DNA of 64,000 bases from Anthoceros angustus. Taxonomy: Eukaryota; Plantae; Anthocerotophyta. The notes beneath the pieces were generated by a model. The model was not told the origin of the DNA. It was given only the letters and a program-made list of their open reading frames with translations, and did no database searches. The stretch spans positions 992,001 to 1,056,000 of the forward strand of contig VJWM01000068.1 in assembly GCA_010909165.1 (NCBI GenBank). The letters run 5' to 3'. Made by a program: the position numbers and the translations under genes. Position 1 is the first letter of the stretch, and every line of letters starts with the position of its first letter. Shown one piece after another: positions 1-63,734 of the stretch.

Positions 1-1176
1 GAATGATTATTTGGCGCGGCGGGATTGCGAGTGGGTCGGGCAGGTGCATAGGTTTTGGGGCTGAAGGTTGGGCTGATTCAGCAGGGGATGAGTCCCGGAA
101 AGGCGGAGAGTTATGGTTGTGATGTTACTTATGTGACGAACAGTGAGCTCAGGTTTGATTTTTGAGGGATAATCTGGCGACGAGCAAGGAGGATTTGGTG
201 CTTCAGGGTTTAATTTTGTGTGATTGATGAGGTGGATTCGATTCTGATTGATGAGGCCAGGACCCCGTTGATCATTTCTGGGTCTGCGGAGAAGCCCAGT
301 GAGAGGTATTTGAAGGCGGCGAAGATTGCCGCGGTGTTTGCCAAGGATGTGCATTACACGGTGGATGAGAAGCAGAAGACGGTGCTGGTGACGGAGCAGG
401 GGTATGAGGCCGCGAGGATATTTTGCAGGTCAAGGATTTGTATGATCCAGGAGCAGTGGGCGAGTTATCTGTTGAATGCGATCAAGGCGAAGGAGTTGTT
501 TCTGCGGGATGTGAATTACATCGTGCGCGCGGGGGAGGTGATGATTGTGGATGAGTTTACTGGGAGGGTGATGCAGGGAAGGCGGTGGAGTGACGGGCTG
601 CACCAGGCTGTGGAGGCGAAGGAGGGCGTCAAGATCCAGAACGAGACGGTGACGCTGGCGTCCATCTCGTACCAGAACTTCTTCCTGCAGTATCCCAAGC
701 TGTGCGGGATGACGGGACAGCGGCCACCGAGAGCCAGGAGTTCAGGAGCATCTACAAGCTGAAGGTGACGGTGGTGCCCACCAACAAGCCCATGGTGCGG
801 AAGGATGAATCGGACGTGGTGTTCAGGACCGCGAGCGGGAAGTGGCGCGCCGCGGTGGTGGAGATTGCGAGAATGCATAAGACAGGAGGCCGGTGCTGGT
901 GGGGACGACGAGTGTGGAGCAGAGCGAGGCGTTGTCAAGACAGCTGCAGGAGGCTGGGATCGCGCACCAGGTGCTGAATGCGAAGCCGGAGAATGTGGAA
1001 AGGAGTCGGAGATCGTTGCGCAGAGTGGGAGGCTTGGGGCCGTCACCATAGCGACCAATATGGCGGGCGCGGGACGGATATCATCTTGGGGAACGCGGAC
1101 TTCATGGCGAAGTTGAAGCTACGGGAGATGCTGATGCCGCAGGTGGTGAAGCTCGCGGATGGCGAGATTCCGTTCC
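1..1176 (+). pseudogene. SECA1: Internal fragment of chloroplast SecA (duplicate of 3156-4344; truncated copy or assembly echo)
   Basis: Near-identical to 3156-4344. Encodes [28 protein letters not shown] and GRGTDIIL, with several single-base indels. Ends at the junction at 1176. Confidence 0.9.
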
Positions 1177-1212
1177 CCACAACCCGCCACGGACTAACGA
1201 GGAGTACAAATT

Positions 1213-1863
1213 TCAACTACCATCTTCAGCTCTGTGCTGTCCGCCGTAGACGTGCTGGTGTCGGTGTTGGTGCCGATGCTCGCCTGGCCCACTCCTGAGC
1301 CTTAGGGCTTTATTCTTCGCCCTGCTGCCCTGCTGCTCCCACCGATTCTTCCCGCTAGGAGCATCAGCAGCGCCTGGGAATTGCACCATCATGCCCAACA
1401 CGAACCCAACCACCAGCGCCGGCAGGTACTTCGCCAGCCCCAGCGCCGGCGACAACCAACTCTGTCGACGCACATTCTTCTGCACCGCTCTCTGCTTCGA
1501 GGGCACACCTTTCTGCAACCCAAATCCGCCACAGTCTCGTCACCAAATCCCACTCCCGCACCAACACACCCCAAACAAACACAAAGCACCCATCTCACAT
1601 CCGGCTTTTCAAATCTCTCCTCCGCCTTCACGGGCCAAACCAAGCGCCTCAGCACCCCGATGTTAGAGATTTTCTCACCAGAGCCGTTCTCACGCTCTTG
1701 CTACATTCACAAAACTCCACACCATAACTCCAACCGCAATAACACCAAACATCTCACACACACAACAACACGCCAAAATCATTCCCCCACAGCCCACCCA
1801 TCTCACCGGCTTCCCTTCCTTCGGCTCCTGCTGGTGCTTCCACAGACAACCGAACGGAGACAT
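1213..1863 (-). CDS. Hypothetical ~152-aa single-pass membrane protein, 3 exons
   Basis: Exons 1863-1807, 1700-1599 and 1512-1213 join in frame across two phase-0 introns (1806-1701 and 1598-1513; GTGAGA donors, TAG/CAG acceptors). Product: [27 protein letters not shown]...[13 protein letters not shown]...[17 protein letters not shown]...HRHQHRHQH...EDGS*. The start codon is uncertain. Confidence 0.55.
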
Positions 1864-2089
1864 GTCGCTCCCGTCCCCCCGTTATGCAGTCAGGCCAGCC
1901 TCACCCTGTACCGCAAGGATGAAGAATCTTCCTTCTCCCACGCTTCCCCAAATTCGGCCTTGCCCCGCTCCCCGCACCACCTCCCCAGACATGGTCGCAC
2001 CATCTGCTACACACACAAATTCCTGAGTCGTGAATCGTGAGCTTCTCGGGACCAGCAGCAGGCATGCTTGTTTGGGTCTGGGATTTTTG

Positions 2090-2150
2090 GTTCATTAAAT
2101 TGATTAAATATTATTTAACTTCTACATAAAATAAACTGGAGTTAAAACGT
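2090..2150. promoter_or_regulatory. AT-rich core of a probable bidirectional promoter (unknown gene / SECA1)
   Basis: Abrupt AT-rich island (ttcattaaattgattaaatattatttaacttctacataaaataaa) between two divergent starts in otherwise GC-rich DNA. Confidence 0.4.
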
Positions 2151-2485
2151 AGGTCAAAGCTGGAGAAAGCGAGACCGTGAATGTGTTAGACACACAGTGT
2201 GATTAGGGTTGTAATAAAAAGGCGTGGATAGGCAAATCGAGTCGTGGCAGGAGGTACATATGTTGGCGAGATATGTCGAAGTTGTCATCCAATGAGGAAG
2301 CGATAATGCGAGCCGAGGGGATGCTTGGCTCGCAGCGGCCTTGGCGGAAAACCCTGACCAGGGCGGGGACGGGAGGAGCAGCTCGCAGCATGGGCAGATC
2401 GAGACGGCGGCGCGAGAGGAATCGAGACGGGGAGGAAGACGAGGAAGAGCTCGAGTGAGGAGGAGGAAGGGGAGGAGGAAGAGGA

Positions 2486-5400
2486 ATGGCGGCGCACACT
2501 GTAGCTGCGGTTGTGTGCTCGGAAGTGGCCGGGGTGGCGGGGAGCTGCTACCATCTCTCCGGCTCCCCGGCGCTGTCGCGGGCGCCGTCGTCTTTGCTGC
2601 TGGGATCGTCGCCGCCGCCACCGTCGCCTCTGGTGCACTACAATGGCCTGCACCGATCGCACAGCGAGACGGCCGTGGGGTCCTTTCTGGGCCAGCGGGG
2701 CCGCTCTGGATGGAGGCGCAGCAGCAGCAGCAGCCGAGGGGAGGAGCGCGGCGGCGTCGGCCTCCTGGGGGTTTCTGGGAGGGCTGTTCAAGGGCAGGAT
2801 TCCGGGAGGGCACGCGGCAGGAGTACGCCAGCGCGGTCGGGGCGGTGAATTCCCTGGAGGCGGAGATGCGGGAGCTTTCGGACGAGGGACTGAGGGGGAG
2901 AACGGAGGAGCTTCGTGCCAGGGTTGCGGGCGGGGAGGGTCTGGATTCCGTGCTGCCGGAGGCGTTTGCCGTGGTGCGGGAGGGGGCCAAGCGGGTGTTA
3001 GGGTTGCGGCCGTTCGACGTGCAGTTGATTGGAGGGATGGTGCTGCATCGCGGCGAGATCGCGGAGATGCGGACCGGGGAGGGGAAAACGCTCGTGGCGG
3101 TGCTCCCGGCGTATTTGAACGCGTTGGGAGGGAAGGGCGTGCATTCGGTGACGGTGAATGATTATTTGGCGCGGCGGGATTGCGAGTGGGTCGGGCAGGT
3201 GCATAGGTTTTTGGGGCTGAAGGTTGGGCTGATTCAGCAGGGGATGAGTCCCGCGGAAAGGCGGGAGAGTTATGGTTGTGATGTTACTTATGTGACGAAC
3301 AGTGAGCTCGGGTTTGATTTTTTGAGGGATAATCTGGCGACGAGCAAGGAGGATTTGGTGCTTCGGGGGTTTAATTTTTGTGTGATTGATGAGGTGGATT
3401 CGATTCTGATTGATGAGGCCAGGACCCCGTTGATCATTTCTGGGTCTGCGGAGAAGCCCAGTGAGAGGTATTTGAAGGCGGCGAAGATTGCCGCGGTGTT
3501 TGCCAAGGATGTGCATTACACGGTGGATGAGAAGCAGAAGACGGTGCTGGTGACGGAGCAGGGGTATGAGGCCGCGGAGGATATTTTGCAGGTCAAGGAT
3601 TTGTATGATCCGCGGGAGCAGTGGGCGAGTTATCTGTTGAATGCGATCAAGGCGAAGGAGTTGTTTCTGCGGGATGTGAATTACATCGTGCGCGCGGGGG
3701 AGGTGATGATTGTGGATGAGTTTACTGGGAGGGTGATGCAGGGAAGGCGGTGGAGTGACGGGCTGCACCAGGCTGTGGAGGCGAAGGAGGGCGTCAAGAT
3801 CCAGAACGAGACGGTGACGCTGGCGTCCATCTCGTACCAGAACTTCTTCCTGCAGTATCCCAAGCTGTGCGGGATGACGGGGACGGCGGCCACCGAGAGC
3901 CAGGAGTTCGGGAGCATCTACAAGCTGAAGGTGACGGTGGTGCCCACCAACAAGCCCATGGTGCGGAAGGATGAATCGGACGTGGTGTTCAGGACCGCGA
4001 GCGGGAAGTGGCGCGCCGCGGTGGTGGAGATTGCGAGAATGCATAAGACAGGGAGGCCGGTGCTGGTGGGGACGACGAGTGTGGAGCAGAGCGAGGCGTT
4101 GTCAAGACAGCTGCAGGAGGCTGGGATCGCGCACCAGGTGCTGAATGCGAAGCCGGAGAATGTGGAAAGGAGTCGGAGATCGTTGCGCAGAGTGGGAGGC
4201 TTGGGGCCGTCACCATAGCGACCAATATGGCGGGGCGCGGGACGGATATCATCTTGGGGAACGCGGACTTCATGGCGAAGTTGAAGCTACAGGAGATGCT
4301 GATGCCGCAGGTGGTGAAGCTCGCGGATGGCGAGATTCCGTTCCAGAAGGGGAGTAAGCTTCCGGTGAGGAAGTCGTGGAGCGCGAATCCGGCGCTGTTC
4401 CCATGCCCGCTGTCTCCAGCCGGGGCGGAGGTGGCGGGCGCCGCCTGCCGGGCGGCGACCGCGGCGTGGGGGCGGCGACCCTGACGGAGCTGGAGGCGGA
4501 GGAGCGGCTTTCCTACGCGTGCGAGAAGGGCCCGACGGAGGACGCGGTCGTGGCGGAGCTCCGGGGCGCGTTCCAGGCGCTGGTGTCGGAATACAGGGCG
4601 TTCACGGAGCGGGAGCGGCAGCAGGTGGTGTGGCAGGAGGGCTGCATGTTGTCGGCACGGAGCGGCACGAGAGTCGGAGGATCGACAACCAGCTCCGCGG
4701 GCGGAGCGGGCGGCAAGGCGATCCGGGAGCTCCTGATTCTTCCTCAGCCTGGAGGACAATTTGTTCCGGATCTTCGGCGGGGACCGGATCCAGGCTCTGA
4801 TGCGGGCCTTCCGGGTGGAGGACCTCCCGATCGAGTCCAAAATGCTGACGCGCAGCCTGGACGAGGCGCAGCGCAAGGTGGAGAGCTACTTCTTCGACAT
4901 CCGGAAGCAGCTGTTCGAGTACGACGAGGTGCTCAACAGCCAGCGCGACCGGGTGTACAGCGAGCGCCGGCGCGCGCTGGTGTCTCCTTCCTTGCAGCCG
5001 CAGATGATGGAGTACGCGGAGCTGACCATGGAGGACATCGTGAACGCCTACGTCCCGGCCTCGGCGCCGCGGGAGCAGTGGAATCTGGACTCGCTTTGCG
5101 CCAAGGTGCGGCAGTATTGTTACCTGCTGGACGATCTCCGGCCCGAGCAGATCTCGAGCAGTGCGAGACGGTGGACGCGCTCCGGGACTTCCTCCGCGCC
5201 GCGGGCAGGGACGCGTACGTGAGGAAGCGCGCGAGGTGGAGGGCCAGGCCGCGGGGTTGATGACCGAGGCGGAAAGATACTTCGTGCTTTCGCAGACAGA
5301 TAATCTGTGGAAGGAGCATCTGCAAGCCCTGAAGTTTGTGCAGACGGCGGTTGGCTTGCGCGGTTACGCGCAAAGAGACCCGCTGATAGAGTACAAGCTC

Positions 5401-5589
5401 GAGGGATATAATCTCTTTCTTGACATGATGGCGCAGATCCGCCGCAATGTCATATACTCTGTCTACCAGTTCAAGCCCGTCATGGTGAAGCCCGAGGCCG
5501 AGCAGGCCCAACAACAGGCTTCTGCTTCTTCTTCGTCTTCTGCTCCTCCTTCCTCTTCTGCTACTGTAGCTAGCCGAAGGACTCGATGA
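2486..5589 (+). CDS. SECA1: Chloroplast preprotein translocase SecA1, intronless; the only full-length copy (several frameshifting indels)
   Basis: Ser/Ala/Arg-rich transit-peptide-like N-terminus. Walker A (MRTGEGKT), DEVD, GRGTDI, the plastid/cyanobacterial-type insertion, [23 protein letters not shown] and [14 protein letters not shown] are all present. The frame is recovered by single-base corrections in G runs, with no intron-sized gaps. Confidence 0.95.
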
Positions 5590-5704
5590 TGTTCGTCTTT
5601 CCCTTGGCACACTGATTTTTTTGCCTTCCTCGAGAATGCACGCCCCGATGCTTCTTGCATGTAGAAGAGAGTGAGTGAGGAAAGGTAGTGAGGTAAAACA
5701 TGGT

Positions 5705-6064
5705 TCATTCCTTGGCACACGATGCCTAGGAAGGCCTTGAGAATGTCATAGGCTACAAATCTGATGCCGTTTTGAGGCACGATCTTGATGGAGTTGGCCC
5801 ACAGGTAGTAGCCTACTGCAACCCAGTCGACTGCATGTCAAGTGCTGGAGACAATGACGAAACAACAGGGGTTGCTTGGCTGGAGGATGGGCTACATAGT
5901 GTACCTTACGCCTTCGTGGTGGTATATGGTTGTGAGTGCCTGCCAAGTGCTGGCGTAGGACGAGGTTTGCATCTGGAAATCGTTTGTAAGTGTGTGCGAG
6001 AGAGCTGGGTTGGCTGGAATGAAAGTAGAGATGTCTACCTGCATTCGCCTGCGAACTGTGTCTA
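5705..6064 (-). pseudogene. 3' fragment of the SLC25 carrier (duplicate)
   Basis: Matches 10789-11158 ([26 protein letters not shown]). Cut at junction 6064. Confidence 0.8.
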
Positions 6065-7928
6065 CTGGGAGGGTGATGCAGGAAGGCGGTGGGTGACGGG
6101 CTGCACCAGGCTGTGGAGGCGAAGGAGGGCGTCAAGATCCAGAACGAGACGGTGACGCTGGCGTCCATCTCGTACCAGAACTTCTTCCTGCAGTATCCCA
6201 AGCTGTGCGGGATGACAGGGACGGCGGCCACCGAGAGCCAGGAGTTCGGGAGCATCTACAAGCTGAAGGTGACGGTGGTGCCCACCAACAAGCCCATGGT
6301 GCGGAAGGATGAATCGGACGTGGTGTTCAGGACCGCGAGCGGGAAGTGGCGCGCCGCGGTGGTGGAGATTGCGAGAATGCATAAGACAGGGAGGCCGGTG
6401 CTGGTGGGGACGACGAGTGTGGAGCAGAGCGAGGCGTTGTCAAGACAGCTGCAGGAGGCTGGGATCGCGCACCAGGTGCTGAATGCGAAGCCGGAGAATG
6501 TGGAAAGGAGTCGGAGATCGTTGCGCAGAGTGGGAGGCTTGGGGCCGTCACCATAGCGACCAATATGGCGGGGCGCGGGACGGATATCATCTTGGGGAAC
6601 GCGGACTTCATGGCGAAGTTGAAGCTACAGGAGATGCTGATGCCGCAGGTGGTGAAGCTCGCGGATGGCGAGATTCCGTTCCAGAAGGGGAGTAAGCTTC
6701 CGGTGAGGAAGTCGTGGAGCGCGAATCCGGCGCTGTTCCCATGCCCGCTGTCTCCAGCCGGGGCGGAGGTGGCGGGCGCCGCCTGCCGGGCGGCGACCGC
6801 GGCGTGGGGGCGGCGACCCTGACGGAGCTGGAGGCGGAGGAGCGGCTTTCCTACGCGTGCGAGAAGGGCCCGACGGAGGACGCGGTCGTGGCGGAGCTCC
6901 GGGGCGCGTTCCAGGCGCTGGTGTCGGAATACAGGGCGTTCACGGAGCGGGAGCGGCAGCAGGTGGTGGCGGCAGGAGGGCTGCATGTTGTCGGCACGGA
7001 GCGGCACGAGAGTCGGAGGATCGACAACCAGCTCCGCGGGCGGAGCGGGCGGCAAGGCGATCCGGGGAGCTCCCGATTCTTCCTCAGCCTGGAGGACAAT
7101 TTGTTCCGGATCTTCGGCGGGGACCGGATCCAGGCTCTGATGCGGGCCTTCCGGGTGGAGGACCTCCCGATCGAGTCCAAAATGCTGACGCGCAGCCTGG
7201 ACGAGGCGCAGCGCAAGGTGGAGAGCTACTTCTTCGACATCCGGAAGCAGCTGTTCGAGTACGACGAGGTGCTCAACAGCCAGCGCGACCGGGTGTACAG
7301 CGAGCGCCGGCGCGCGCTGGTGTCTCCTTCCTTGCAGCCGCAGATGATGGAGTACGCGGAGCTGACCATGGAGGACATCGTGAACGCCTACGTCCCGGCC
7401 TCGGCGCCGCGGGAGCAGTGGAATCTGGACTCGCTTTGCGCCAAGGTGCGGCAGTATTGTTACCTGCTGGACGATCTCCGGCCCGAGCAGATCTCCGAGC
7501 AGTGCGAGACGGTGGACGCGCTGGGACTTCCTCCGCGCCGCAGGCAGGGACGCGTACGTGAGGAAGCGCGCCGAGGTGGAGGGCCAGGCCGCGGGGTTGA
7601 TGACCGAGGCGGAAAGATACTTCGTGCTTTCGCAGACAGATAATCTGTGGAAGGAGCATCTGCAAGCCCTGAAGTTTGTGCAGACGGCGGTTGGCTTGCG
7701 CGGTTACGCGCAAAGAGACCCGCTGATAGAGTACAAGCTCGAGGGATATAATCTCTTTCTTGACATGATGGCGCAGATCCGCCGCAATGTCATATACTCT
7801 GTCTACCAGTTCAAGCCCGTCATGGTGAAGCCGAGGCCGAGCAGGCCCAACAACAGGCTTCTGCTTCTTCTTCGTCTTCTGCTCCTCCTTCCTCTTCTGC
7901 TACTGTAGCTAGCCGAAGGACTCGATGA
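6063..7928 (+). pseudogene. SECA1: 5'-truncated SecA duplicate
   Basis: Restarts at the sequence of position 3723 ([10 protein letters not shown]) and runs to the same stop codon. Confidence 0.9.
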
Positions 7929-8041
7929 TGTTCGTCTTTCCCTTGGCACACTGATTTTTGCCTTCCTCGAGAATGCACGCCCCGATGCTTCTTGCATGTA
8001 GAAGAGAGTGAGTGAGGAAAGGTAGTGAGGTAAAACATGGT

Positions 8042-9672
8042 TCATTCCTTGGCACACTTGGTGATGCCTAGGAAGGCCTTGAGAATGTCATAGGCTACAA
8101 ATCTGATGCCGTTTTGAGGCACGATCTTGATGGAGTTGGCCCACAGGCCACGGTAGTAGCCTGCAACCCAGTCGACTGCATGTCAAGTGCTGGAGACAAT
8201 GACGAAACAACAGGGGTTGCTTGGCTGGAGGATGGGCTACATAGTGTACCTTACGCCTTCGTGGTGGTATATGGTTGTGAGTGCCTGCCAAGTGCTGGCG
8301 TAGGACGAGGTTTGCATCTGGAAATCGTTTGTAAGTGTGTGCGAGAGAGCTGGGTTGGCTGGAATGAAAGTAGAGATGTCTACCTGCATTCGCCTGCGAA
8401 CTGTGTCTAAAGGGTAGCATGTGGTTGTGGCCACCATGCCTGCAGCTGAGCCTATCAGCAGGGTGATGGATGCCATCTCCTGAACTTGGCCGGCATCATA
8501 TACTAGTTTCTTCAACATGTCATATCTGAATACGAGTGACAGACATGTCAATATATCACATCCAGCTGATTCAGGCATGAGAAGTTTGAAGTTTGACACG
8601 GTTTGTGGTTGGGTGGGCACTTACGAGGCAAAATTGATGGCTGCGTAGGGGTGATGGCAATAATGGATGGAGAGAGTCCTTTGTACAAAGCGGAAATTCC
8701 CTCCTGGACAGACAGACAAGGTAAAGCTATCTGCCAGGAAGTGCAGGAAAGAACATATGGATGGATGGAAGCGAAAGTTGTGAGTATTACCTTGGCCAGA
8801 ATCGTGCGGAGTACGGAGGATGCCTGAATACTCTGCGTCTGGCAACGCCAGTCTCAACCGCAATGTGTCCAGGGATGGGTTAAGGATGTTGCTGTGATTC
8901 CAGCCAGAGCCCCAGCTAACAGTCGTTGGCGCACTGTGAGCTTGCAATCAGGCCCAGCTAGTAGCTCCTTGTAGAGGTCGTGGGACATGAACTGGCAACG
9001 CAGTTGAGAGTCAGAAAGGTAGAACAGACAACGTTCAAGGCACAGGACAATTTGAAGTAACTTGTGTGTCTTACATCACATCGAGCTCCATGACTACAAA
9101 CTGCCCTCTACTTCGTTAACCTCTAAGAGACACAGTTCATGCTCTTTGCATGGACTGTCTCCACAGGAGAAGAGTTAACAACATGAAAACATCACCTGCA
9201 GATGAGGTGAAGAATAATAAGCACCTGCGATGCGAGGCACTCCTACAGCAACCTGATGACTCTAACGTTTAAGCACAGACGGCAATTTGCCATCCACGGA
9301 CAGTGTTGAGACATACCTGCGCAGCAGAATAGGGAAGATCCTGATCACGTTGGCTCCATTCCCAGTAGGCACGAGCCCTTCCTCGTGCCAGATCTTTGAA
9401 AGAGCCTGCCCCACAGAACTGTAAGGCGCGGAATGCAGCCCCACTGGCTGACATGTTGCACCTGCCCACCACCACCACCACCATCAGCTGCCACCCCAAG
9501 ACTACTACTACTCAGGCGCGTGCCCGCATGCAGCTTTCACATACTTGCCTGAAAGAGGATCTTAACACGGTCCAGAGGAGCTGTGCACGTCCGGGCAACA
9601 GCACCTGCCAACCCACCTGCTAACAGAAGCTTCCCGACACGATCCAGCCGCGCTGTATTTTCCGAGTCTCTC
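8042..9672 (-). pseudogene. SLC25 carrier duplicate lacking the first ~2 codons
   Basis: Same exons and introns as 10789-12445. Junction 9672 removes ATG ACA G. Confidence 0.8.
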
Positions 9673-10675
9673 GGAATACAGGGCGTTCACGGAGCGGAGC
9701 GGCAGCAGGTGGTGGCGGCAGGAGGGCTGCATGTTGTCGGCACGGAGCGGCACGAGAGTCGGAGGATCGACAACCAGCTCCGCGGGCGGAGCGGGCGGCA
9801 AGGCGATCCGGGAGCTCCTGATTCTTCCTCAGCCTGGAGGACAATTTGTTCCGGATCTTCGGCGGGGACCGGATCCAGGCTCTGATGCGGGCCTTCCGGG
9901 TGGAGGACCTCCCGATCGAGTCCAAAATGCTGACGCGCAGCCTGGACGAGGCGCAGCGCAAGGTGGAGAGCTACTTCTTCGACATCCGGAAGCAGCTGTT
10001 CGAGTACGACGAGGTGCTCAACAGCCAGCGCGACCGGGTGTACAGCGAGCGCCGGCGCGCGCTGGTGTCTCCTTCCTTGCAGCCGCAGATGATGGAGTAC
10101 GCGGAGCTGACCATGGAGGACATCGTGAACGCCTACGTCCCGGCCTCGGCGCCGCGGGAGCAGTGGAATCTGGACTCGCTTTGCGCCAAGGTGCGGCAGT
10201 ATTGTTACCTGCTGGACGATCTCCGGCCCGAGCAGATCTCCGAGCAGTGCGAGACGGTGGACGCGCTCCGGGACTTCCTCCGCGCCGCGGGCAGGGACGC
10301 GTACGTGAGGAAGCGCGCCGAGGTGGAGGGCCAGGCCGCGGGGTTGATGACCGAGGCGGAAAGATACTTCGTGCTTTCGCAGACAGATAATCTGTGGAAG
10401 GAGCATCTGCAAGCCCTGAAGTTTGTGCAGACGGCGGTTGGCTTGCGCGGTTACGCGCAAAGAGACCCGCTGATAGAGTACAAGCTCGAGGGATATAATC
10501 TCTTTCTTGACATGATGGCGCAGATCCGCCGCAATGTCATATACTCTGTCTACCAGTTCAAGCCCGTCATGGTGAAGCCGAGGCCGAGCAGGCCCAACAA
10601 CAGGCTTCTGCTTCTTCTTCGTCTTCTGCTCCTCCTTCCTCTTCTGCTACTGTAGCTAGCCGAAGGACTCGATGA
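9671..10675 (+). pseudogene. SECA1: 3' third of SecA (duplicate)
   Basis: Restarts at the sequence of 4586/6924. ORF 9846-10655 encodes the SecA wing/scaffold region. Confidence 0.9.
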
Positions 10676-10788
10676 TGTTCGTCTTTCCCTTGGCACACTG
10701 ATTTTTGCCTTCCTCGAGAATGCACGCCCCGATGCTTCTTGCATGTAGAAGAGAGTGAGTGAGGAAAGGTAGTGAGGTAAAACATGGT

Positions 10789-23152: not shown

Positions 23153-23159
23153 CTGCCAC

Positions 23160-51200: not shown

Positions 51201-51849
51201 GGCAAGGTCATCCCTGCTCCCAGCTCTGTCTTCTCGGCCACCCAGGTCAAAGAGCTTCTCCTCCTGGCCCAGAGACTCAGGAACAGCCCCATTCAGCAGC
51301 TTCACCAAACCCTTGAGCACCAGGACAGGCTCGGAGGAGCACTATCAGCTACTGATTTGGGCCCCCAGCCGCAACGTGTTCCGTTCCAGCTCCAGCAGCT
51401 TCTCTTTGTGTACTCCCCAGCCTGAGGCTGCACATTAGAAGGAGTAGAGCTGAGCCCCAGCAGCTTCTCCTTCCCAAGCTTGTGGCCTGACCCATGCCTG
51501 TGCCGAACGATGACTTCTTCTTCGATTTCGACGCAACCACAGGTTCAGTATCCCGCTCATCAGCATCAAAACTAAGGAGACTGGTGCCTGCAGCTCTCCC
51601 ACCCTTCCCCTTCTGCTTCTCCTTCTTGCCACCCAGCTTCCTACTGCTACTCCCATCAGCATCATCCTCATCTCCAGCAAAGCTCAAGAGCTTGTTGACG
51701 GGAGGCTTCCTACAGCTCTATCCTTGCCCTGCTCTTTCCTCCCCAGCCTTGCCCGTTTTCTCCACAGGCTTCGCCCCGGATTTCTCATTCTCGTCATTGT
51801 CCCCATCATCCTCATCTGCCCTCTTCCGCCACTTCTTCGTCTTCATCAT
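48249..51849 (-). CDS. ILP1: ILP1 / GCFC2-PAXBP1 (NTR2-like spliceosome disassembly factor), only full-length copy, many indels
   Basis: N-terminus MMKTKKWRKRADEDD...KLLSFAGDEDD...QPQAGEYTKEKLLELERNT...IPDAAAIAAAKAKREKLR...EEEQLRKG, followed by the GCFC domain exons. Confidence 0.9.
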
Positions 51850-52849: not shown

Positions 52850-52872
52850 CTTCTTCTTCTTCTTCTTCTTCT
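52850..52872. repeat. (CTT)n microsatellite upstream of the EF-hand gene; echoes at ~55926, ~57792 and ~60494
   Basis: Direct CTT run; length and purity differ between echoes. Confidence 0.85.
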
Positions 52873-53014
52873 TTCGGAACTACATATGTGACTATAGGTT
52901 GAACGAGCAGCAAAGCTGTTATGAATCATACATAGGTACATATATAGCTGCTAAATCATGGGATCCAAACAGAATGTGAAGGTGCAAATGCGGTTTTCAG
53001 ATCGGCGAGATTTG

Positions 53015-54927
53015 ACCTCCATCATCTCCTCTGCATTATCAGCAGATCGTCTTTCAGTCATTGCATTGGCACGATCCTCATGTAACTTTTGCATGTGTTC
53101 TTCCAGCTCCTCAATCAAAGGACCCTTATCCTGCCAGATACAAACAAAATTGAGGGTTGGAACCTTTGACATACCCTTGCAAGTGGACGTGGCAGAAAAA
53201 ACGAGTTTACTAGTAGCAAATGCAAGGAATTAGTGGAAAGTTACCTGGAGAAAGTCACACAATGCTGAGACATAATCACGTAGCTCTTGCATGTAGAGAT
53301 ACTTGTCTCCTGCCGCTGTCAGTGCCTTGTCCAAAGTGCTTACAGCAAGTATAGAACTGTTAAGGTTCTCCTCCGTTCTGGAAAGGTCTGCCTTAGTCCT
53401 CCCATGACTCTCCTGCCACAGAAGGAGTGACCACCCATCAGATATTTCAGCAGAGGTAGCTCCACCACTGACGCCTAATGATGAAAATCCATCCACCGTC
53501 TTCACACCAACTCCTACTCCTGAAGAGAGCTCTAGCATGGCGTAGACTCTGGTGTCTCTGCAGCTAATGATATCAAAGCTAAAAAAGAAAAAATCACCAT
53601 ACCCGCATTCTCTGCAGACCCTCTCTTAGAGCCTGTAATGTAGATTCCGCTTGCTGAGCAGCAGTGAGGGCTTCTATACCTCTGCCCCCAAAACCCCAAA
53701 CTGCACTACCGAGGCCTGAGGAGACAGTCCCCGGGAGGAAAGCGGTGCTCTGAGCAGCAGGAACTGGCCCCCCAGTAACAGCTGTCCCTCTAACCGCAGC
53801 TTCATCTACCCTCTTCCCAACCCCCTTCCTAAGCTGTTCCTCTTCCCACCTCCTCTCCTCGTCTTCCTCATCTTCGTCTCTATGCTCTGTTGCCAAGCCA
53901 TCTGCCCTGTCATCCACAGATTCAAAAACTCCTCCCCTCTTCTTGTGCTTGTTTGGTTTTTCTCCCAAGAATGCCATTCTGCCCCTAACTTCACCTTCGT
54001 CCTCACTTGAGGCAGCGTCATCTTTATCCAGGTCATCATCTCGTTCCCTCACAAGGCCCGACTCTCGCAGCTTGCCTCTAGAGTGCACGGTGTCTCCTGA
54101 CCCCAGACTGATATAATCAGGAGCAGACTGGGCCAGCCTGAGTTTCTCCCTTTTAGCTTTAGCTGCAGCAATGGCTGCAGCATCTGGTATATGGGTAATC
54201 CCACCTCCATCTGCCCCTGGTCCAATCCCCATCAACTCCAGCCGACTTTCTGCATCATCCCTGTCCAGCCTCAACCTGGCAAGGTCATCCCTGCTCCCAG
54301 CTCTGTCTTCTCGGCCACCCAGGTCAAAGAGCTTCTCCTCCTGGCCCAGAGACTCAGGAACAGCCCCATTCAGCGGCTTCACCAAACCCTTGAGCACCAG
54401 GACAGGCTCGGAGGGAGCACTATCAGCTACTGATTTGGGCCCCCCCAGCCGCAACGTGTTCCGTTCCAGCTCCAGCAGCTTCTCTTTTGTGTACTCCCCA
54501 GCCTGAGGCTGCACATTAGAAGGAGTAGAGCTGAGCCCCAGCAGCTTCTCCTTCCCAAGCTTGTGGCCTGACCCATGCCCTGTGCCGAACGATGACTTCT
54601 TCTTCGATTTCGACGCAACCACAGGTTCAGTATCCCGCTCATCAGCATCAAAACTAAGGAGACTGGTGCCTGCAGCTCTCCCACCCTTCCCCTTCTGCTT
54701 CTCCTTCTTGCCACCCAGCTTCCTACTGCTACTCCCATCAGCATCATCCTCATCTCCAGCAAAGCTCAAGAGCTTGTTGACGGGAGGCTTCAGCTCTATC
54801 CTTGCCCTGCTCTTTCCTCCCCGGCCTTGCCCGTTTTCTCCACAGGCTTCGCCCCGGATTTCTCATTCTCGTCATTGTCCCCATCATCCTCATCTGCCCT
54901 CTTCCGCCACTTCTTCGTCTTCATCAT
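53015..54927 (-). pseudogene. ILP1: 5' half of ILP1 (duplicate; cleanest copy of exon 1); a shorter 5' fragment lies at 56416-56804
   Basis: ORF 53594-54769 (391 aa). Confidence 0.85.
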
Positions 54928-57792
54928 TTTCGCCACGTGAGATCGCCCACCCGAAAGTGGGCACCAACTCCACTCAATTGTCTGCCAAGAGCCCCGGCAG
55001 ACCTGGCCATACCACGCTCCACACGCCCCACTGGAGACTGCGCAAAACTCTTGCGCAGCTTAGGTTAAAACTCCAAGGCGCCTCCGGCTCACCTATACCA
55101 ACATGCAAAATCCGATGCAGCGCCATCAGCGCGCTCCTAATAAGCCAAGCCCGTCTCCATACCTATCCCTCCACTGCTAACATTGACCGCTAGATCCTCT
55201 CTCTCTCGCTGCAGCTTCGCTGACAGCAACTGTGTGTGGAGGTGCACAAGAAACCAGCCCACCACGAGAGGAGGGGAAAGAAGGGCAGCGTTGTCATGTG
55301 CTGTGTTCATGCATTGCTAGAAACAGGACAAGGGCGCAGCAGGAAGTCTTCCACAACACTCGCAAACATTTGTCTCCCTCGGCGTATGTTTACGAACTGG
55401 ACGGGAGGGTATGGTGATGGCTGGTTCTTTGATTACATCTCTCTGCTAAATTCGCACCAAACCTCTATTTACAGCTCACTTGCTCATGCTAGTCTCAGGC
55501 TTACTTGCTTGCTCTCATCTTGTGCCGTCTGGTGAGCAACATGAGGAAGCCCATTGTGTTCGAGGAGGGATGCATTTCCACAGAAAAGCGAAACTCTCAG
55601 GGCAGGGGCGGAGACCTCTCGTCGAGAAACGAGATGAAATGGAGTTGCTGCAAACAGGACAGATGAATCCAGAACCTTGGTGAGCGTGGAGTGCTGCTGG
55701 GCACGTTCCTTGCTGTGTATGCCACAGCTCACAAAGCTTCCGATGCTGCAGAAGCTTAGGCCAAATGGACACATGGACACAAGACCACCGTTGTTAAGCA
55801 TCCTGCGCTTAGATCGGTACTTACGTGGGGTGCCTAGAGGGGTGGATGCCGCAAGTAGCTAAGGCACACCATGGTACAAGTTGCCAAGTCCCATGACAGT
55901 CCAAGTGGACTAAATCAGACTTCTCTCTTCTTCTTCTTTTTCTTCTTCCTCTTCTTCTTTCGGAACTACATATGTGACTATAGGTTGAACGAGCAGCAAA
56001 GCTGTTATGAATCATACATAGGTACATATATAGCTGCTAAATCATGGGATCCAAACAGAATGTGAAGGTGCAAATGCGGTTTTCAGATCGGCGAGATTTG
56101 AGCATGTGTGTTCTTGACAGCAGACGGTGAGAGCGTCATGGCAGAGGGGTATTCTCTGCTAGATGGGTCCCAGATCCGCAAGGCACTGCCAGACCTCCAG
56201 ACGAGAGCATCCAAGAAGTTTGCGGAGCTGACAGTGGAGGGCAAGGGAGTGCTCACTGGGGATCAGGCACGGGCTGCGGCCGAGGCAGAAGCTGCAGCGC
56301 TGCTGGGAGCGCAGCTGTCCACCCAGCGCCTCGAGAAGGCCTTTCGGGGATCACAACACCTGGGGATGAATTGGACGAGGAAGCATTTGGGGCCACCGTG
56401 GAGAAGTATGTGCAGTTCTCCTTCCCAAGCTTGTGGCCTGACCCATGCCCTGTGCCGAACGATGACTTCTTCTTCGATTTCGACGCAACCACAGGTTCAG
56501 TATCCCGCTCATCAGCATCAAAACTAAGGAGACTGGTGCCTGCAGCTCTCCCACCCTTCCCCTTCTGCTTCTCCTTCTTGCCACCCAGCTTCCTACTGCT
56601 ACTCCCATCAGCATCATCCTCATCTCCAGCAAAGCTCAAGAGCTTGTTGACGGGAGGCTTCCCTACAGCTCTATCCTTGCCCTGCTCTTTCCTCCCCCCG
56701 GCCTTGCCCGTTTTCTCCACAGGCTTCGCCCCGGATTTCTCATTCTCGTCATTGTCCCCATCATCCTCATCTGCCCTCTTCCGCCACTTCTTCGTCTTCA
56801 TCATTTTCGCCACGTGAGATCGCCCACCCGAAAGTGGGCACCAACTCCACTCAATTGTCTGCCAAGAGCCCCGCAGACCTGGCCATACGCTCACACGCCC
56901 CACTGGAGACTGCGCAAAACTCTTGCGCAGCTTAGGTTAAGAGCTCCAAGGCGCCTCCGGCTCACCTATACCAACATGCAAAATCCGATGCAGCGCCATC
57001 AGCGCTCTAATAATAAGCCCGTCTCCATACCTATCCCTCCACTGCTAACATTGACCGCTAGATCCTCTCTCTCGCTGCAGCTTCGCTGACAGCAACTGTG
57101 TGTGGAGGTGCACAAGAAACCAGCCCACCACGAGAGGAGGGGAAAGAAGGGCAGCGTTGTCATGTGCTGTGTTCATGCATTGCTAGAAACAGGACAAGGG
57201 CGCAGCAGGAAGTCTTCCACAACACTCGCAAACATTTGTCTCCCTCGGCGTATGTTTACGAACTGGACGGGAGGGTATGGTGATGGCGCCGGTTCTTTGA
57301 TTACATCTCTCTGCTAAATTCGCACCAAACCTCTATTTACAGCTCACTTGCTCATGCTAGTCTCAGGCTTACTTGCTTGCTCTCATCTTGTGCCGTCTGG
57401 TGAGCAACATGAGGAAGCCCATTGTGTTCGAGGAGGGATGCATTTCCACAGAAAAGCGAAACTCTCAGGGCAGGGGGGCGGAGACCTCTCGTCGAGAAAC
57501 GAGATGAAATGGAGTTGCTGCAAACAGGACAGATGAATCCAGAACCTTGGTGAGCGTGGAGTGCTGCTGGGCACGTTCCTTGCTGTGTATGCCACAGCTC
57601 ACAAAGCTTCGATGCTGCAGAAGCTTAGGCCAAATGGACACACATTTATAAGACCACCGTTGTTAAGCATCCTGCGCTTAGATCGGTACTTACGTGGGGT
57701 GCCTAGGGGTGGATGCCGCAAGTAGCTAAGGCACACCATGGTACAAGTTGCCAAGTCCCATGACAGTCCAAGTGGACTAAATCAGACTTCTC

Positions 57793-57824
<32 letters not shown>

Positions 57825-58278
57825 GGAACTACATATGTGACTATAGGTTGAACGAGCAGCAAAGCTGTTATGAATCATACATAGGTACATATATAGCTGC
57901 TAAATCATGGGATCCAAACAGAATGTGAAGGTGCAAATGCGGTTTTCAGATCGGCGAGATTTGAGCATGTGTGTTCTTGACAGCAGACGGTGAGAGCGTC
58001 ATGGCAGAGGGGTATTCTCTGCTAGATGGGTCCCAGATCCGCAAGGCACTGCCAGACCTCCAGACGAGAGCATCCAAGAAGTTTGCGGAGCTGACAGTGG
58101 AGGGCAAGGGAGTGCTCACTGGGGATCAGGCACGGGCTGCGGCCGAGGCAGAAGCTGCAGCGCTGCTGCTGGGGCGCAGCTGTCCACCCAGCGCCTCGAG
58201 AAGGCCTTTCGGGGATCACAACACCTGGGGATGAATTGGACGAGGAAGCATTTGGGGCCACCGTGGAAGTATGTGCAG
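54541..58278 (+). repeat. Direct tandem duplication, junction 56415, period ~1870, microhomology GCAG with 1-bp loss
   Basis: gtatgtGCAG|ttctccttccc; donor reads gcagcttctcc. Confidence 0.95.
56138..56415 (+). pseudogene. 5' fragment of the EF-hand protein gene
   Basis: MAEGYSLLDGSQIR...ATVEKYVQ, cut at junction 56415. Confidence 0.8.
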
Positions 58279-59337
58279 GCCATTGCGGATGCTCTGGAAG
58301 GTACTGCACATCGCTGATCTCTGGCTGGATCTTGTGGAAATGTATAAATGTGTGTTTTACGGCTGGTGGGATGTGTGGACTTTGGAATTGCATGGGTTGA
58401 TGACTTTTCTGTTGATGCTACAGAGGAGCCAGTGGCAGTATCTGTGTTGGATGGGTCTGTCATGAGAGGATTGTTGGAAGATGAGGACGAATTCGCCATG
58501 CTGGCAGAGAATCTCTTCACTGTGCTGGACGCAGATGAGAATGGGAAGCTGAACCGGAGTGAGATCCGACCGCGATTCTCCAGCTGGGAGCTGAGATGGG
58601 GATACCGGCTCCATCAGGTACCAAAATGATTGCTCAGTCATGTGACTGGGGTTTCGAGGGTTTGCTTTTTCTGGATCTGAACGTGCTGCTGAACTTGTTC
58701 TGCAGCGAAGCCTGAGTAGAGTCGCTGTTGACTGATCTTTTCAAGAAGTATGGGACTGGGGGCCGAAGAGCTTGGCCAAACACAGTTTGCAAAGCTGCTT
58801 CAAGAGATGCTGCAAGACCTTGCGGACTCGTTGAAAGCAAAGCCCATTATCGTTGTCCATGACTTTCAAGTGCTAACTGGATCACGGCTGAGAAAGGTAT
58901 CAATGACCCTTCAGGTTCATGGCAGAGACAAATGCGTATTCGTGCCAACAGGGTTTAGGGTCTCTCTGGTTGCATCAAGTCACAGCTCTCATGTGGCAAT
59001 GTTGCAGGTACTGGCAGATGAGAAGTTACTGGAGGAAATGACTGACACCATCTTCAAGGAACTTGATGTTGACAGCAATGGCAAGCTAGACAGAGTGGAG
59101 ATCCGACCTATTTTTGAGAGTAAGGGGATGGACTGGGGCCTTCCTCCTTTGAAGGCAAACGAAACTGTGCTGCAGCTTTATGACAATGTTTTCAACGCTG
59201 TGGATGCGGACAACAGTGGACAAGTAGACCGATCAGAGTTTCAGGTTTTGGTGAAAACAATTTTCGAGCATTTCGCGGACCAGCTTGAAGTGAACCCAAT
59301 TGTTGTCGATACGGAGACTGCGTATCAGCAGGAGTAA
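58001..59337 (+). CDS. Plant calcium-binding EF-hand family protein, multi-exon
   Basis: EF loops DADENGKLNRSE, DVDSNGKLDRVE and DADNSGQVDRSE; family motifs LEDEDEFAMLAENLF and ELGQTQFAKLLQ; GT-AG introns. Confidence 0.85.
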
Positions 59338-60494
59338 TCTCGAAAGCATGAGATGCTTCTTTGTTTCCAGGTCCAGGCAGCTCTCCATTCCTTTTGGAGG
59401 ATTTGGGTACTCACATCAAGAAAGTATTCGCTGACTCGGTCGCAAGCTGTTTGCTAGATGCAGCGGAATATCGTACTCCATATGAGGGCAGGTGAAATGC
59501 TTGGAGTGCGGGCGGTTACCAGGAGTTGATTTTCTTCGTGTGAGCAAGTGCGTTTTGCGGTGGGATTTCACAACAGAGAAGTGATAATGTCTCTAAAGGA
59601 GACGGTTAGCTGTGTCTGCCTACTTTCACCGCTGATTGGTTTTGACCCTTGGATGACTGTCCAGTGTCTTTCCGCAGTGCACAAAGTTAGGCTTCCGTAG
59701 AAGCTTATTACTATCTAGTGAAGGTTCTTGTCCTAGGTGCTGGATGATGCTGTACACGGCTATGCAAGACGAAGGCATGGTTGCACCTCATGCTGTAAAT
59801 TGTTTTGTGCTTCCTGTATGCATGTGCAGTCGCGGCTCCCAGCTCTGAAGCAGGGCAAGCAGCTCCACCGCACAAATTACAGAAGCCGGCCTTGAGGTTG
59901 AAATGCTTTGCAGGAAACTCTCTCGGACTAATGTGTGCAGAATCCGGCACTTGCTAGTAAAATAATTGCAGTGACATGAAGTGCAACGCGAAACACTCAA
60001 GCTTGCCAGATGTAGAGATCGGAAAGATGACAAAGTCCGTAGCATTAGGAGATGTGGGACGGAAGACCAGGTCTGGTTGCTAATCATAAATTAACGAATG
60101 TTCGTAGATAAGCAAGTCGCGCCAAATCCACTTACAACTTGCATTCGAAACAGGAAATGTTCAGCCGAAACGGGGCTTCCGGCTGAGCGTTCATCCAGAA
60201 ACGAGATGAAATGGAGTTGCTGCAAACAGGACAGATGAATCCAGAACCTTGGTGAGCGTGGAGTGCTGCTGGGCACGTTCCTTGCTGTGTATGCCACAGC
60301 TCACAAAGCTTCGATGCTGCAGAAGCTTAGGCCAAATGGACACACATTTATAAGACCACCGTTGTTAAGCATCCTGCGCTTAGATCGGTACTTACGTGGG
60401 GTGCCTAGGGGTGGATGCCGCAAGTAGCTAAGGCACACCATGGTACAAGTTGCCAAGTCCCATGACAGTCCAAGTGGACTAAATCAGACTTCTC

Positions 60495-60526
<32 letters not shown>

Positions 60527-60702
60527 GGAACTACATATGTGACTATAGGTTGAACGAGCAGCAAAGCTGTTATGAATCATACATAGGTACATATATAGCT
60601 GCTAAATCATGGGATCCAAACAGAATGTGAAGGTGCAAATGCGGTTTTCAGATCGGCGAGATTTGAGCATGTGTGTTCTTGACAGCAGACGGTGAGAGCG
60701 TC

Positions 60703-62039
60703 ATGGCAGAGGGGTATTCTCTGCTAGATGGGTCCCAGATCCGCAAGGCACTGCCAGACCTCCAGACGAGAGCATCCAAGAAGTTTGCGGAGCTGACAGT
60801 GGAGGGCAAGGGAGTGCTCACTGGGGATCAGGCACGGGCTGCGGCCGAGGCAGAAGCTGCAGCGCTGCTGCTGGGGCGCAGCTGTCCACCCAGCGCCTCG
60901 AGAAGGCCTTTCGGGGATCACAACACCTGGGGATGAATTGGACGAGGAAGCATTTGGGGCCACCGTGGAAGTATGTGCAGGCCATTGCGGATGCTCTGGA
61001 AGGTACTGCACATCGCTGATCTCTGGCTGGATCTTGTGGAAATGTATAAATGTGTGTTTTACGGCTGGTGGGATGTGTGGACTTTGGAATTGCATGGGTT
61101 GATGACTTTTCTGTTGATGCTACAGAGGAGCCAGTGGCAGTATCTGTGTTGGATGGGTCTGTCATGAGAGGATTGTTGGAAGATGAGGACGAATTCGCCA
61201 TGCTGGCAGAGAATCTCTTCACTGTGCTGGACGCAGATGAGAATGGGAAGCTGAACCGGAGTGAGATCCGACCGCGATTCTCCAGCTGGGAGCTGAGATG
61301 GGGATACCGGCTCCATCAGGTACCAAAATGATTGCTCAGTCATGTGACTGGGGTTTCGAGGGTTTGCTTTTTCTGGATCTGAACGTGCTGCTGAACTTGT
61401 TCTGCAGCGAAGCCTGAGTAGAGTCGCTGTTGACTGATCTTTTCAAGAAGTATGGGACTGGGGGCCGAAGAGCTTGGCCAAACACAGTTTGCAAAGCTGC
61501 TTCAAGAGATGCTGCAAGACCTTGCGGACTCGTTGAAAGCAAAGCCCATTATCGTTGTCCATGACTTTCAAGTGCTAACTGGATCACGGCTGAGAAAGGT
61601 ATCAATGACCCTTCAGGTTCATGGCAGAGACAAATGCGTATTCGTGCCAACAGGGTTTAGGGTCTCTCTGGTTGCATCAAGTCACAGCTCTCATGTGGCA
61701 ATGTTGCAGGTACTGGCAGATGAGAAGTTACTGGAGGAAATGACTGACACCATCTTCAAGGAACTTGATGTTGACAGCAATGGCAAGCTAGACAGAGTGG
61801 AGATCCGACCTATTTTTGAGAGTAAGGGGATGGACTGGGGCCTTCCTCCTTTGAAGGCAAACGAAACTGTGCTGCAGCTTTATGACAATGTTTTCAACGC
61901 TGTGGATGCGGACAACAGTGGACAAGTAGACCGATCAGAGTTTCAGGTTTTGGTGAAAACAATTTTCGAGCATTTCGCGGACCAGCTTGAAGTGAACCCA
62001 ATTGTTGTCGATACGGAGACTGCGTATCAGCAGGAGTAA
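60703..62039 (+). CDS. EF-hand protein, second full copy
   Basis: Appears identical to 58001-59337, including the same frameshifts. Confidence 0.85.
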
Positions 62040-63734
62040 TCTCGAAAGCATGAGATGCTTCTTTGTTTCCAGGTCCAGGCAGCTCTCCATTCCTTTTGGA
62101 GGATTTGGGTACTCACATCAAGAAAGTATTCGCTGACTCGGTCGCAAGCTGTTTGCTAGATGCAGCGGAATATCGTACTCCATATGAGGGCAGGTGAAAT
62201 GCTTGGAGTGCGGGCGGTTACCAGGGAGTTGATTTTCTTCGTGTGAGCAAGTGCGTTTTTGCGGTGGGATTTCACAACAGAGAAGTGATAATGTCTCTAA
62301 AGGAGACGGTTAGCTGTGTCTGCCTACTTTCACCGCTGATTGGTTTTTTGACCCTTGGATGACTGTCCAGTGTCTTTCCGCAGTGCACAAAGTTAGGCTT
62401 CCCGTAGAAGCTTATTACTATCTAGTGAAGGTTCTTGTCCTAGGTGCTGGATGATGCTGTACACGGCTATGCAAGACGAAGGCATGGTTGCACCTCATGC
62501 TGTAAATTGTTTTTGTGCTTCCTGTATGCATGTGCAGTCGCGGGCTCCCCAGCTCTGAAGCAGGGCAAGCAGCTCCACCGCACAAATTACAGAAGCCGGC
62601 CTTGAGGTTGAAATGCTTGTAGGAAACTCTCTCGGACTAATGTGTGCAGAATCCGGCACTTGCTAGTAAAATAATTGCAGTGACATGAAGTGCAACGCGA
62701 AACACTCAGCTTGCCAGATGTAGAGATCGGAAAGATGACAAAAGTCCGTAGCATTAGGAGATGTGGGACGGAAGACCAGGTCTGGTTGCTAATCATAAAT
62801 TAACGAATGTTCGTAGATAAGCAAGTCGCGCCAAATCCACTTACAACTTGCATTCGAAACAGGGAAATGTTCAGCCGAAACGGGGCTTCCGGCTAGGCGT
62901 TCATCCACCTTGAAACGAAGTCATATTTTTATCGAAGGCAGTCCAGGTGAATCATGGTGGACTGGAATTAGCGGTTCCAAGCAGGTGCGCAATCTACCAA
63001 AGTGGCGCACATAGAGCTGGATTTCAGCAAGGCCGCGCATGCTTCTGCGAACCATAGCTGTCTAGCCCGCTGGCCTGGGTTTACAAGGGAGGCGACAGGG
63101 CCAGCAGGTTTTGGGAAGCAGCCAGAGGAACAGGTCCGGCTGCCTGACTGAAAGGTGTGTGAAGAAGGAAGCTTGGAGAAGTTGGTGTAGGAGGAATATT
63201 ACATCTCTACGCCTCCCAGACGAGCTGCTCCAAGCTCTTGTTCGCTTGCTGCTATGGCAGATGGATGAGTGGAGCTTCCTGGTTGTTAATCGCTTGGTGG
63301 ACATGCGTGTAAACTGTGGCAGCTCGGAAGCAGCTCGGCCTGGAGCAAGCGTTCGCGTTCCACAGGCTTGGTGAGAGGGATGTACAGTATTCACTTGGAC
63401 CACGACATTGCCGGATATTCCTAGCCGGGTAACTGTAACTTCAGATTGGGAATACATAAGGTGAAAGCATTGGCAGTTACCGTGACATGGAAAGAGGGGC
63501 GTGTTTACTAAAACATCTCATCGGTATCCAAGCTCCAATGCAGGAGCACAAGCGAGCGCCAGCGGATGATGTTTCGCCGCCATTCGCCGCGACGCCATAA
63601 CTAAGGCGCCAGCAGAGCTTGCCATTGTTCTCCCTACCCAGCCGTCCATCACACACGCTCGCCTCACCTCGATCCCTCCCTTCTGCGATTTTGTGTGTGC
63701 GAGGAGGGCGCGTCCGCAGCGGCACCGGGAAGCC

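Follow-up and report, generated by a model that had tools for sequence, protein, structure and literature searches.

The 64-kb window (the whole stretch of DNA that we analysed) consists of 16 overlapping tiles that spread about 27 kb of single-copy plant genes over 63 kb. This ladder is probably an assembly artefact rather than a novel form of genome instability. An artefact is favored by the sequencing-type errors that distinguish the copies, by frameshifts in SecA, by a missing exon of THOC5, and by single-copy contigs from a related plant whose order matches that of the collapsed sequence.

Geometry of the ladder

When we compared the window to itself with blastn, we found 15 junctions, at 1176, 6064, 9672, 13396-13401, 16693, 23568, 29117, 32245, 35692, 38997, 43353, 47502, 53015, 56415, and 60197. 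(The exact site of the junction at 13396-13401 is ambiguous because of a 7-bp microhomology.) All 15 jump back by 1870-3168 bp, and the complete tiles are 3128-6875 bp long. Adjacent copies are 97.3-99.7% identical, and the tile matches have E-values of 0, which excludes chance as the source of the ladder. If only the new part of each tile is kept, then the window collapses to 27,061 bp, and each tile is collinear on this collapsed sequence, with a depth of 1-5. The original prediction had described 15 junctions with back-jumps of 1.87-3.17 kb, tiles of 3.1-6.9 kb, and about 27 kb of non-redundant sequence, and our analysis recovered all of these. The tiles, along with a segment of T5 that is discussed below, are as follows (position in the window, strand, and position in the collapsed sequence).

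T0: 1..1176 (+), collapsed 1980-3168; inside SecA
T1: 1177..6064 (+), collapsed 1-4888; the sole tile with the whole SecA gene
T2: 6065..9672 (+), collapsed 2549-6151; junction 6064 goes back 2338 bp
T3: 9673..13401 (+), collapsed 3412-7114; junction 9672 goes back 2746 bp
T4: 13402..16693 (+), collapsed 5016-8288; junction 13401 goes back 2116 bp, with 7 bp of exact microhomology
T5: 16694..23568 (+), collapsed 5424-12279; junction 16693 goes back 2880 bp, with 4 bp of microhomology
T6: 23569..29117 (+), collapsed 9570-11385 and then 12280-16007; junction 23568 goes back 2710 bp, with 0 bp of microhomology
T7: 29118..32245 (+), collapsed 13399-16541; junction 29117 goes back 2609 bp, with a 34-bp imperfect similarity
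T8: 32246..35692 (+), collapsed 14190-17641; junction 32245 goes back 2342 bp
T9: 35693..38997 (+), collapsed 15506-18814; junction 35692 goes back 2139 bp, with 5 bp of microhomology
T10: 38998..43353 (+), collapsed 15916-20276; junction 38997 goes back 2895 bp, with 11/13 bases similar
T11: 43354..47502 (+), collapsed 17224-21339; junction 43353 goes back 3055 bp, with 5 bp of microhomology
T12: 47503..53015 (+), collapsed 18211-23735; junction 47502 goes back 3157 bp, with 6 bp of microhomology
T13: 53016..56415 (+), collapsed 20671-24049; junction 53015 goes back 3060 bp
T14: 56416..60197 (+), collapsed 22185-25968; junction 56415 goes back 1870 bp
T15: 60198..64000 (+), collapsed 23269-27061, to the end of the window; junction 60197 goes back 2702 bp
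Segment U: 22675..23568 (-), the last 894 bp of T5; absent from T6

The repeats are all direct, with tile starts and tile ends that increase monotonically, and the self-comparison found no inverted matches in the window. All 15 junctions lead backward, and the sole forward move is a skip at 25389/25390. Overlapping pieces that are placed in order give just such a pattern of direct backward jumps with monotonic starts and ends. The shortest tile is 3.1 kb and the shortest overlap is 1.87 kb; given a constant hazard of switching with the observed mean, the probability that 14 runs would all exceed 3.1 kb is P ~3e-5. The jump lengths and tile lengths showed no periodicity (in 256-bp bins, for example). 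The repeated part stops at 62907, and because T0 is cut by the start of the window, the ladder continues to the left. There are 0 Ns in the window.

We also considered a transposon-mediated or satellite-type repeat. The copies have no common repeat unit, and there are no terminal repeats or target-site duplications at their ends and no inverted repeat. Each junction is unique and is located within ordinary genic sequence. This argues against such repeats and agrees with an earlier reading of the sequence, in which no transposon ends flanked the tiles.

Microhomology and overlap lengths

At 14 junctions, the exact microhomology is 2, 2, 7, 4, 0, 1, 1, 5, 2, 5, 6, 1, 0-4, and 1 bp. It reaches at least 4 bp at 5 of the 14 (chance P = 0.004 for each), and several junctions have imperfect matches of 11/13 to 16/18. 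Adjacent tiles are joined seamlessly, and neither filler nor adapter sequence lies between them. The lengths of the overlaps vary little (coefficient of variation 0.15), tile length is correlated with the next step (0.92), and the overlaps are more uniform than those from a simulation at equal depth in which every non-contained read was kept in the layout. Microhomology above the chance level and uniform overlaps both fit poorly with read ends that were simply concatenated. The junction microhomology would be explained by a stitching step in which the ends of pieces are aligned, and also by template switching by a polymerase.

Genes in the ladder

Pfam domains in the window correspond to SecA, THOC5, an ILP1-like protein (NTR2/GCFC), a mitochondrial carrier, a methyltransferase, and an EF-hand protein. 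The SecA, THOC5, and ILP1-like genes that had been proposed from the sequence were thus borne out, but the proposed ORC6 was not recovered by our scans of open reading frames.

SecA is frameshifted in every copy: there are at least 5 changes of frame in T1, 3 in T2, and 1 in T3, and the copy in T0 is split among several frames. In the related plant, SecA is one uninterrupted open reading frame of 1060 amino acids. The methyltransferase reading frame is intact in just one of its three copies (T11, 43799-44815, 338 amino acids). The copy in T9 is truncated by the loss of one G from a run of G (GGGG to GGG), and the copy in T10 carries the same loss. We also identified the reading frames for the NTR2/GCFC (ILP1-like) protein in T13 (53594-54769, minus strand) and for the EF-hand protein in T14 (58750-59337). 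It could be argued that a ladder of this kind would break every gene, but this argument is weak: most genes fit within at least one tile, and only THOC5 is missing an exon.

Differences between the copies

Across 57 kb of aligned copies, we found 376 gap openings versus 141 mismatches. Most of the differences are single-base changes in the length of homopolymers, and transitions account for 32 of the roughly 39 real substitutions. Homopolymer indels together with transitions are the error profile of long reads rather than a sign of divergence. Furthermore, at the 39 substitution columns with a depth of at least 3, the minor allele was never present in more than one copy. The copies differ by sequencing-type errors and not by mutational divergence or haplotype variants.

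The error loads of different copies of the same sequence are very unequal: T10 has 1 error where T11 has 22, and T11 has 14 where T12 has 46 (p ~1e-5). T12 has the most private differences (50), which are mainly deletions. Some systematic homopolymer errors are common to several copies, which implies that the copies are consensus-like and are not single raw reads. Because of errors that are common to copies, such as the one in the methyltransferase of T9 and T10, a majority vote among the copies does not give the true base. Nor is there an accurate backbone with noisy inserts, as the methyltransferase is frameshifted in T9, which would belong to the backbone, and is intact in T11, which would be an insert.

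We found neither an excess nor a depletion of errors within 100 bp of the junctions. If short reads spanned the junctions, they would map uniquely there and the flanks should have been polished, so the lack of cleaner flanks favors an artefact. Changes in error rate exactly at the junctions were not supported, as 25 of 60 shifted segmentations fit equally well, and this counts against an artefact.

A missing exon of THOC5

T5 carries the THOC5 exons for Pfam positions 100-327, and segment U, at the end of T5, carries the exon for positions 100-209. Because it holds this exon, segment U is genuine sequence from the locus, and we ruled out that it is the tail of a chimeric read. The skip at 25389/25390 in T6 drops segment U as well as the exon for Pfam positions 4-101. 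We did not find the exon for positions 4-101 anywhere in the 64-kb window; the THOC5 exons were searched for singly by reference and not as a joined spliced model. In the related plant, this exon is conserved and lies between the homologs of 23162 and 25498. Since a conserved exon is absent at the irregular join, the window both repeats and omits real sequence. The omission also implies that the sequence is wrong in this one join region and that 25390, where the tile resumes, is not the break point.

Comparison with other sequences

Two short-read contigs (L001 and L082), which are from a related species and not from the same species, are single-copy and are collinear with positions 1572-6123 and 9670-18624 of the collapsed sequence. 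In a word search for independent contigs from the same species, the best matches were 86% identical (SecA) and 68% identical (methyltransferase), so none of them was from this species. Exact-protein look-ups with two open reading frames from the window gave no match. A scan of metagenomes found SecA loci only, all with at most 75% identity, which is too low for this plant or a near relative.

Explanations for the ladder

The true locus is probably a single-copy stretch of roughly 27-28 kb. We propose that successive overlapping pieces, derived from long reads, were appended to each other and that their true overlaps of 1.9-3.2 kb were left untrimmed. The pieces were probably attached via short spurious alignments of their ends, or they may simply have been abutted. 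Consensus and polishing would then have been run on the inflated template, and the redundant copies, having received unequal shares of the long and short reads, would have kept different subsets of nanopore-type errors. We infer that no read spans the junctions and, likewise, that a software step lies behind the joins. Most assemblers require several reads to support a join, which counts against an artefact. The original prediction had favored an assembler or gap-filler that stitched overlapping reads together without collapsing them. The internal evidence (the errors, the frameshifts, the lost exon, and the comparison to the relative) supports an artefact of this sort, but it fits poorly with raw reads that were pasted end to end: the copies are too consensus-like, the microhomology is above chance, and the overlaps are too uniform.

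Alternatively, the ladder might be a real rearrangement in the sequenced plant that formed in one pass, as a polymerase repeatedly disengaged and re-primed 2-3 kb behind at microhomology (FoSTeS/MMBIR or break-induced replication, in a chromoanasynthesis-like event). It would then record a single processive run of replication or repair that slipped back by about 2.6 kb at least 15 times, which would be a previously undescribed staircase form, and the differences between the copies would be no more than assembly errors that were left uncorrected, since a repeat of this kind cannot be polished with short reads. We consider this unlikely. The microhomology of 0-7 bp, some of it imperfect, is within the range that is known for FoSTeS/MMBIR-type junctions; the joins lack filler or adapter; the narrow range of back-jump lengths looks as if it were physically set; and the copy differences, being sequencing errors, are silent on the age of the ladder. 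Also, the output of an assembler normally reflects read support. However, known replicative rearrangements mix orientations, jump directions, and segment sizes, while all 15 of these jumps are direct and backward and no run is shorter than 3.1 kb. The nascent strand would be fully homologous to its template, which gives no reason for 15 out-of-register re-annealings. Furthermore, copies that are physically present should be covered equally, which does not fit with their very unequal error loads, and the lost exon implies that THOC5 would be broken in a plant that is probably haploid.

It is still less plausible that the ladder is a real but non-genomic molecule, either a rare somatic molecule or a chimera that formed in vitro (for example, when a polymerase switched templates during library preparation or amplification), that was read once or a few times and was kept as a contig. 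Microhomology at the joins would be expected, and the poor and uneven base quality would fit with very low read support. But chimeras from multiple-displacement amplification are predominantly inverted, and 0 of the 15 junctions are. The ladder is also no shorter than 63 kb and extends past the left edge of the window, and its shared systematic errors are typical of a consensus of many reads. The published nanopore libraries for hornworts, which may not be the ones behind this window, were prepared by ligation and were amplification-free (PMC7027989, PMC8075897). Fifteen independent natural tandem duplications over evolutionary time seem exceedingly improbable, even though each junction alone resembles a simple tandem duplication and no junction need be re-copied if the source intervals avoid the earlier joins. 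Independent duplications would not account for the lack of substitution-type divergence or for homopolymer indels that break essential genes; it is implausible that 15 near-equal events would all fall within 27 kb of housekeeping genes and nowhere else in the window; and the related plant is single-copy.

If the ladder is an artefact, then about 36 kb of the window is false sequence. Too many genes would be counted for SecA, THOC5, the methyltransferase, the ILP1-like protein, and the EF-hand protein, gene models would be broken, and a real exon of THOC5 would be hidden. Findings of template switching in this genome would need to be confirmed at the level of reads before they are interpreted biologically. 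If the ladder were real, then it would represent an unprecedented and highly regular replication error in single-copy genes.

Similarity to known systems

The junctions of FoSTeS/MMBIR and chromoanasynthesis resemble those of the ladder in that they are clustered, lead to gains in copy number, and have 0-7 bp of microhomology. In contrast to their mixture of inversions, directions, and sizes, the ladder has only direct, backward jumps of near-constant length, and its tiles progress monotonically. Tandem duplications and templated insertions by polymerase theta also involve short microhomology and nearby head-to-tail duplication, and one could interpret the junction at 23568 as a 1821-bp templated insert in this style. 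However, polymerase-theta events are isolated and scattered across the genome, whereas the ladder would comprise 15 overlapping events in 27 kb. Chimeras from multiple-displacement amplification share template switching at microhomology and differ in their mostly inverted orientation.

Among the assembly errors that have been described are under-collapsed "homotype" false duplications, which arise from errors in long reads and include faulty joins and gap fills (Ko et al. 2022, PMC9516828). Like the ladder, these contain adjacent copies of single-copy genic sequence that differ by sequencing-type errors, and they lead to false gene gains and broken gene models. They are defined by low read depth and usually comprise one pair of duplicates, often separated by a gap (PMC9516828), whereas in the ladder, 15 consecutive gap-free overlaps build a staircase with a maximum depth of 5 copies, and the joins show microhomology.

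Geometry of the ladder

The window (no N; 52% G+C) reads as a ladder, in which single-copy genes are written as 16 overlapping tiles (T0 to T15) separated by 15 junctions where the sequence jumps back upstream. Self-blastn of the whole window yielded 33 long matches, all of them direct and none inverted. It recovered all 15 junctions of the original prediction at the same positions, and after every one the sequence restarts 1870-3168 bp upstream, in agreement with the predicted 1.87-3.17 kb. Complete tiles measure 3128-6875 bp, as expected (3.1-6.9 kb), and the new parts of the tiles join into a non-redundant "collapsed" sequence of 27,061 bp, which bears out the estimate of ~27 kb. All 16 tiles are collinear on this sequence, with starts and ends both strictly rising, and copy depth along it varies from 1 to 5. 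Because T0 begins inside collapsed coordinates that T1 precedes, the ladder extends past the left edge of the window.

Overlap lengths have a coefficient of variation of 0.15, and tile length is correlated with the next step (0.92); both values are tighter than in a simulation in which every non-contained read was placed, at the depth observed here. We found no fixed-bin periodicity in tile or jump lengths, and no junction sequence is repeated among the 15 (each occurs once). Exact microhomology at 14 junctions was 2, 2, 7, 4, 0, 1, 1, 5, 2, 5, 6, 1, 0-4 and 1 bp. It reached at least 4 bp at 5 of the 14 (the chance per junction is 0.004), and several junctions have imperfect matches of 11/13 to 16/18.

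Genes on the locus and in a related plant

Pfam scans of one ORF at a time gave the gene content, which we placed on the collapsed locus.

Genes identified by Pfam ORF scans
Window 2341-5490, + strand: SecA, chloroplast-type, apparently intron-less
Collapsed locus, - strand: mitochondrial carrier
Collapsed locus, - strand: THOC5
Collapsed locus, + strand: EEF1A-lysine-methyltransferase-like gene
Collapsed locus, - strand: NTR2/GCFC gene, ILP1 type
Collapsed locus, + strand: EF-hand gene

Thus SecA, THOC5 and the ILP1-type gene were correctly named beforehand, but ORC6 was not recovered in the ORF scans. The best protein matches of SecA are SecA proteins of bryophytes and other plants.

For comparison we used two contigs of a related plant (68-86% protein identity), both from the same public short-read run: L001 (10.4 kb) and L082 (from a 20.9-kb contig). 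SecA appears to be without introns both in the window (2341-5490) and in the relative (L001:450-3632); SecA genes of seed plants are intron-rich. Both contigs are single-copy and collinear with collapsed 1572-6123 and 9670-18624, with nearly equal spacing, so the collapsed order is ancestral. This order is expected whether the ladder is an artefact or real.

Some neighbours differ. In the relative, a GCFC/ILP1-like gene lies on the opposite side of the THOC5-to-methyltransferase block in reversed orientation (L082:1-1206 versus collapsed 18953-20226), a squalene-epoxidase gene replaces the window's neighbour of the methyltransferase, and a short segment upstream of SecA in the window (collapsed 103-322) is downstream and inverted (L001:6695-6937).

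Differences between copies

Alignments of the copies, 57 kb in all, contain 141 mismatches and 376 gap openings (557 gap bases), and adjacent copies differ at ~10 sites per kb. Where depth is at least 3, the copies differ almost exclusively in homopolymer length, by a single base each time. Transitions account for 32 of ~39 true substitutions.

The methyltransferase ORF is complete (338 aa) in just one of three copies, T11 (43799-44815). T9 and T10 have the same one-G deletion in a run of four G, which cuts the ORF to 150 aa.

Window 38278, 41170 and 44231: methyltransferase G run in three copies, two of which share a one-base loss

This shared loss implies that the copies bear common systematic homopolymer under-calls plus private errors, and it makes a majority vote among copies unreliable for the true base in this assembly. 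SecA is frameshifted in every copy in the window (at least 5 frame changes in T1, 3 in T2 and 1 in T3, partly shared and partly private) and is one unbroken 1060-aa ORF in the relative. The 195-aa EF-hand ORF is unbroken in each of its two ladder copies (58750-59337 and 61452-62039), so errors spare some duplicated gene copies.

Copies of one sequence can carry very different numbers of errors, by up to ~twenty-fold (1 in T10 versus 22 in T11; 14 in T11 versus 46 in T12). We found no sharp alignment of changes in error rate with junctions, and neither enrichment nor depletion of differences within 100 bp of them. The mix of shared and private errors in the copies is that of a nanopore-type consensus rather than of a single raw read or natural divergence.

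A missing THOC5 exon

Junction 23568, between T5 (16694-23568) and T6 (23569-29117), is irregular: T6 repeats just 1821 bp before a forward skip at 25389/25390, and it lacks the final 894 bp of T5. Those 894 bp are genuine locus sequence, because they include the THOC5 exon that spans Pfam positions 100-209. We searched for the THOC5 exons separately, by reference, one exon each. The relative has the exon for positions 4-101 ~140 bp farther upstream, flanked by the homologs of window 23162 and 25498. This exon had no match in all 64 kb, and Pfam scans of local ORFs did not find positions 4-101.

Window 23168-23568 / 25390-25500 (expected site); relative L082:3956-4396: missing THOC5 exon, Pfam 4-101

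Since the relative has this exon and the window does not, the assembly lacks at least ~300 bp of coding sequence that is real and conserved. The assembled sequence thus drops some real DNA as well as duplicating it, and the window as assembled holds no complete THOC5 gene.

Origin of the ladder

The ladder is probably an assembly artefact. The original preference for an assembler or gap-filler is favoured by the strictly direct, backward and monotonic geometry, the sharp minimum lengths of tiles and overlaps, the error spectrum of the copies, the unequal quality of copies of identical sequence, the persistence of errors immediately beside junctions, and the missing THOC5 exon. Plain concatenation of reads is a poor fit to the junction microhomology and the tight overlap lengths. 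A real ladder is favoured by the microhomology, which polymerase template switching would produce too, by the seamless joins, and by the read support that joins in assemblies usually require; against the geometry, errors and lost exon, we nevertheless consider a real ladder improbable. A chimera formed in vitro or from a rare molecule seems slightly less probable again, and an accumulation of natural duplications is scarcely credible.

An assembly artefact could also account for the microhomology. A stitcher that compared the ends of pieces within a limited search window might attach every new piece at its highest-scoring short alignment and miss any overlap that extended beyond that window; joins of this kind could yield microhomology and perhaps also the minimum overlap length.

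False duplications of the under-collapsed, homotype kind have been described as a class of assembly error (PMC9516828). Published hornwort assemblies used R9 nanopore reads with wtdbg, miniasm/Racon or MaSuRCA, followed by Pilon (PMC7027989, PMC8075897), and the error profile of the window, whose own pipeline may differ, is compatible with these nanopore and Pilon pipelines.
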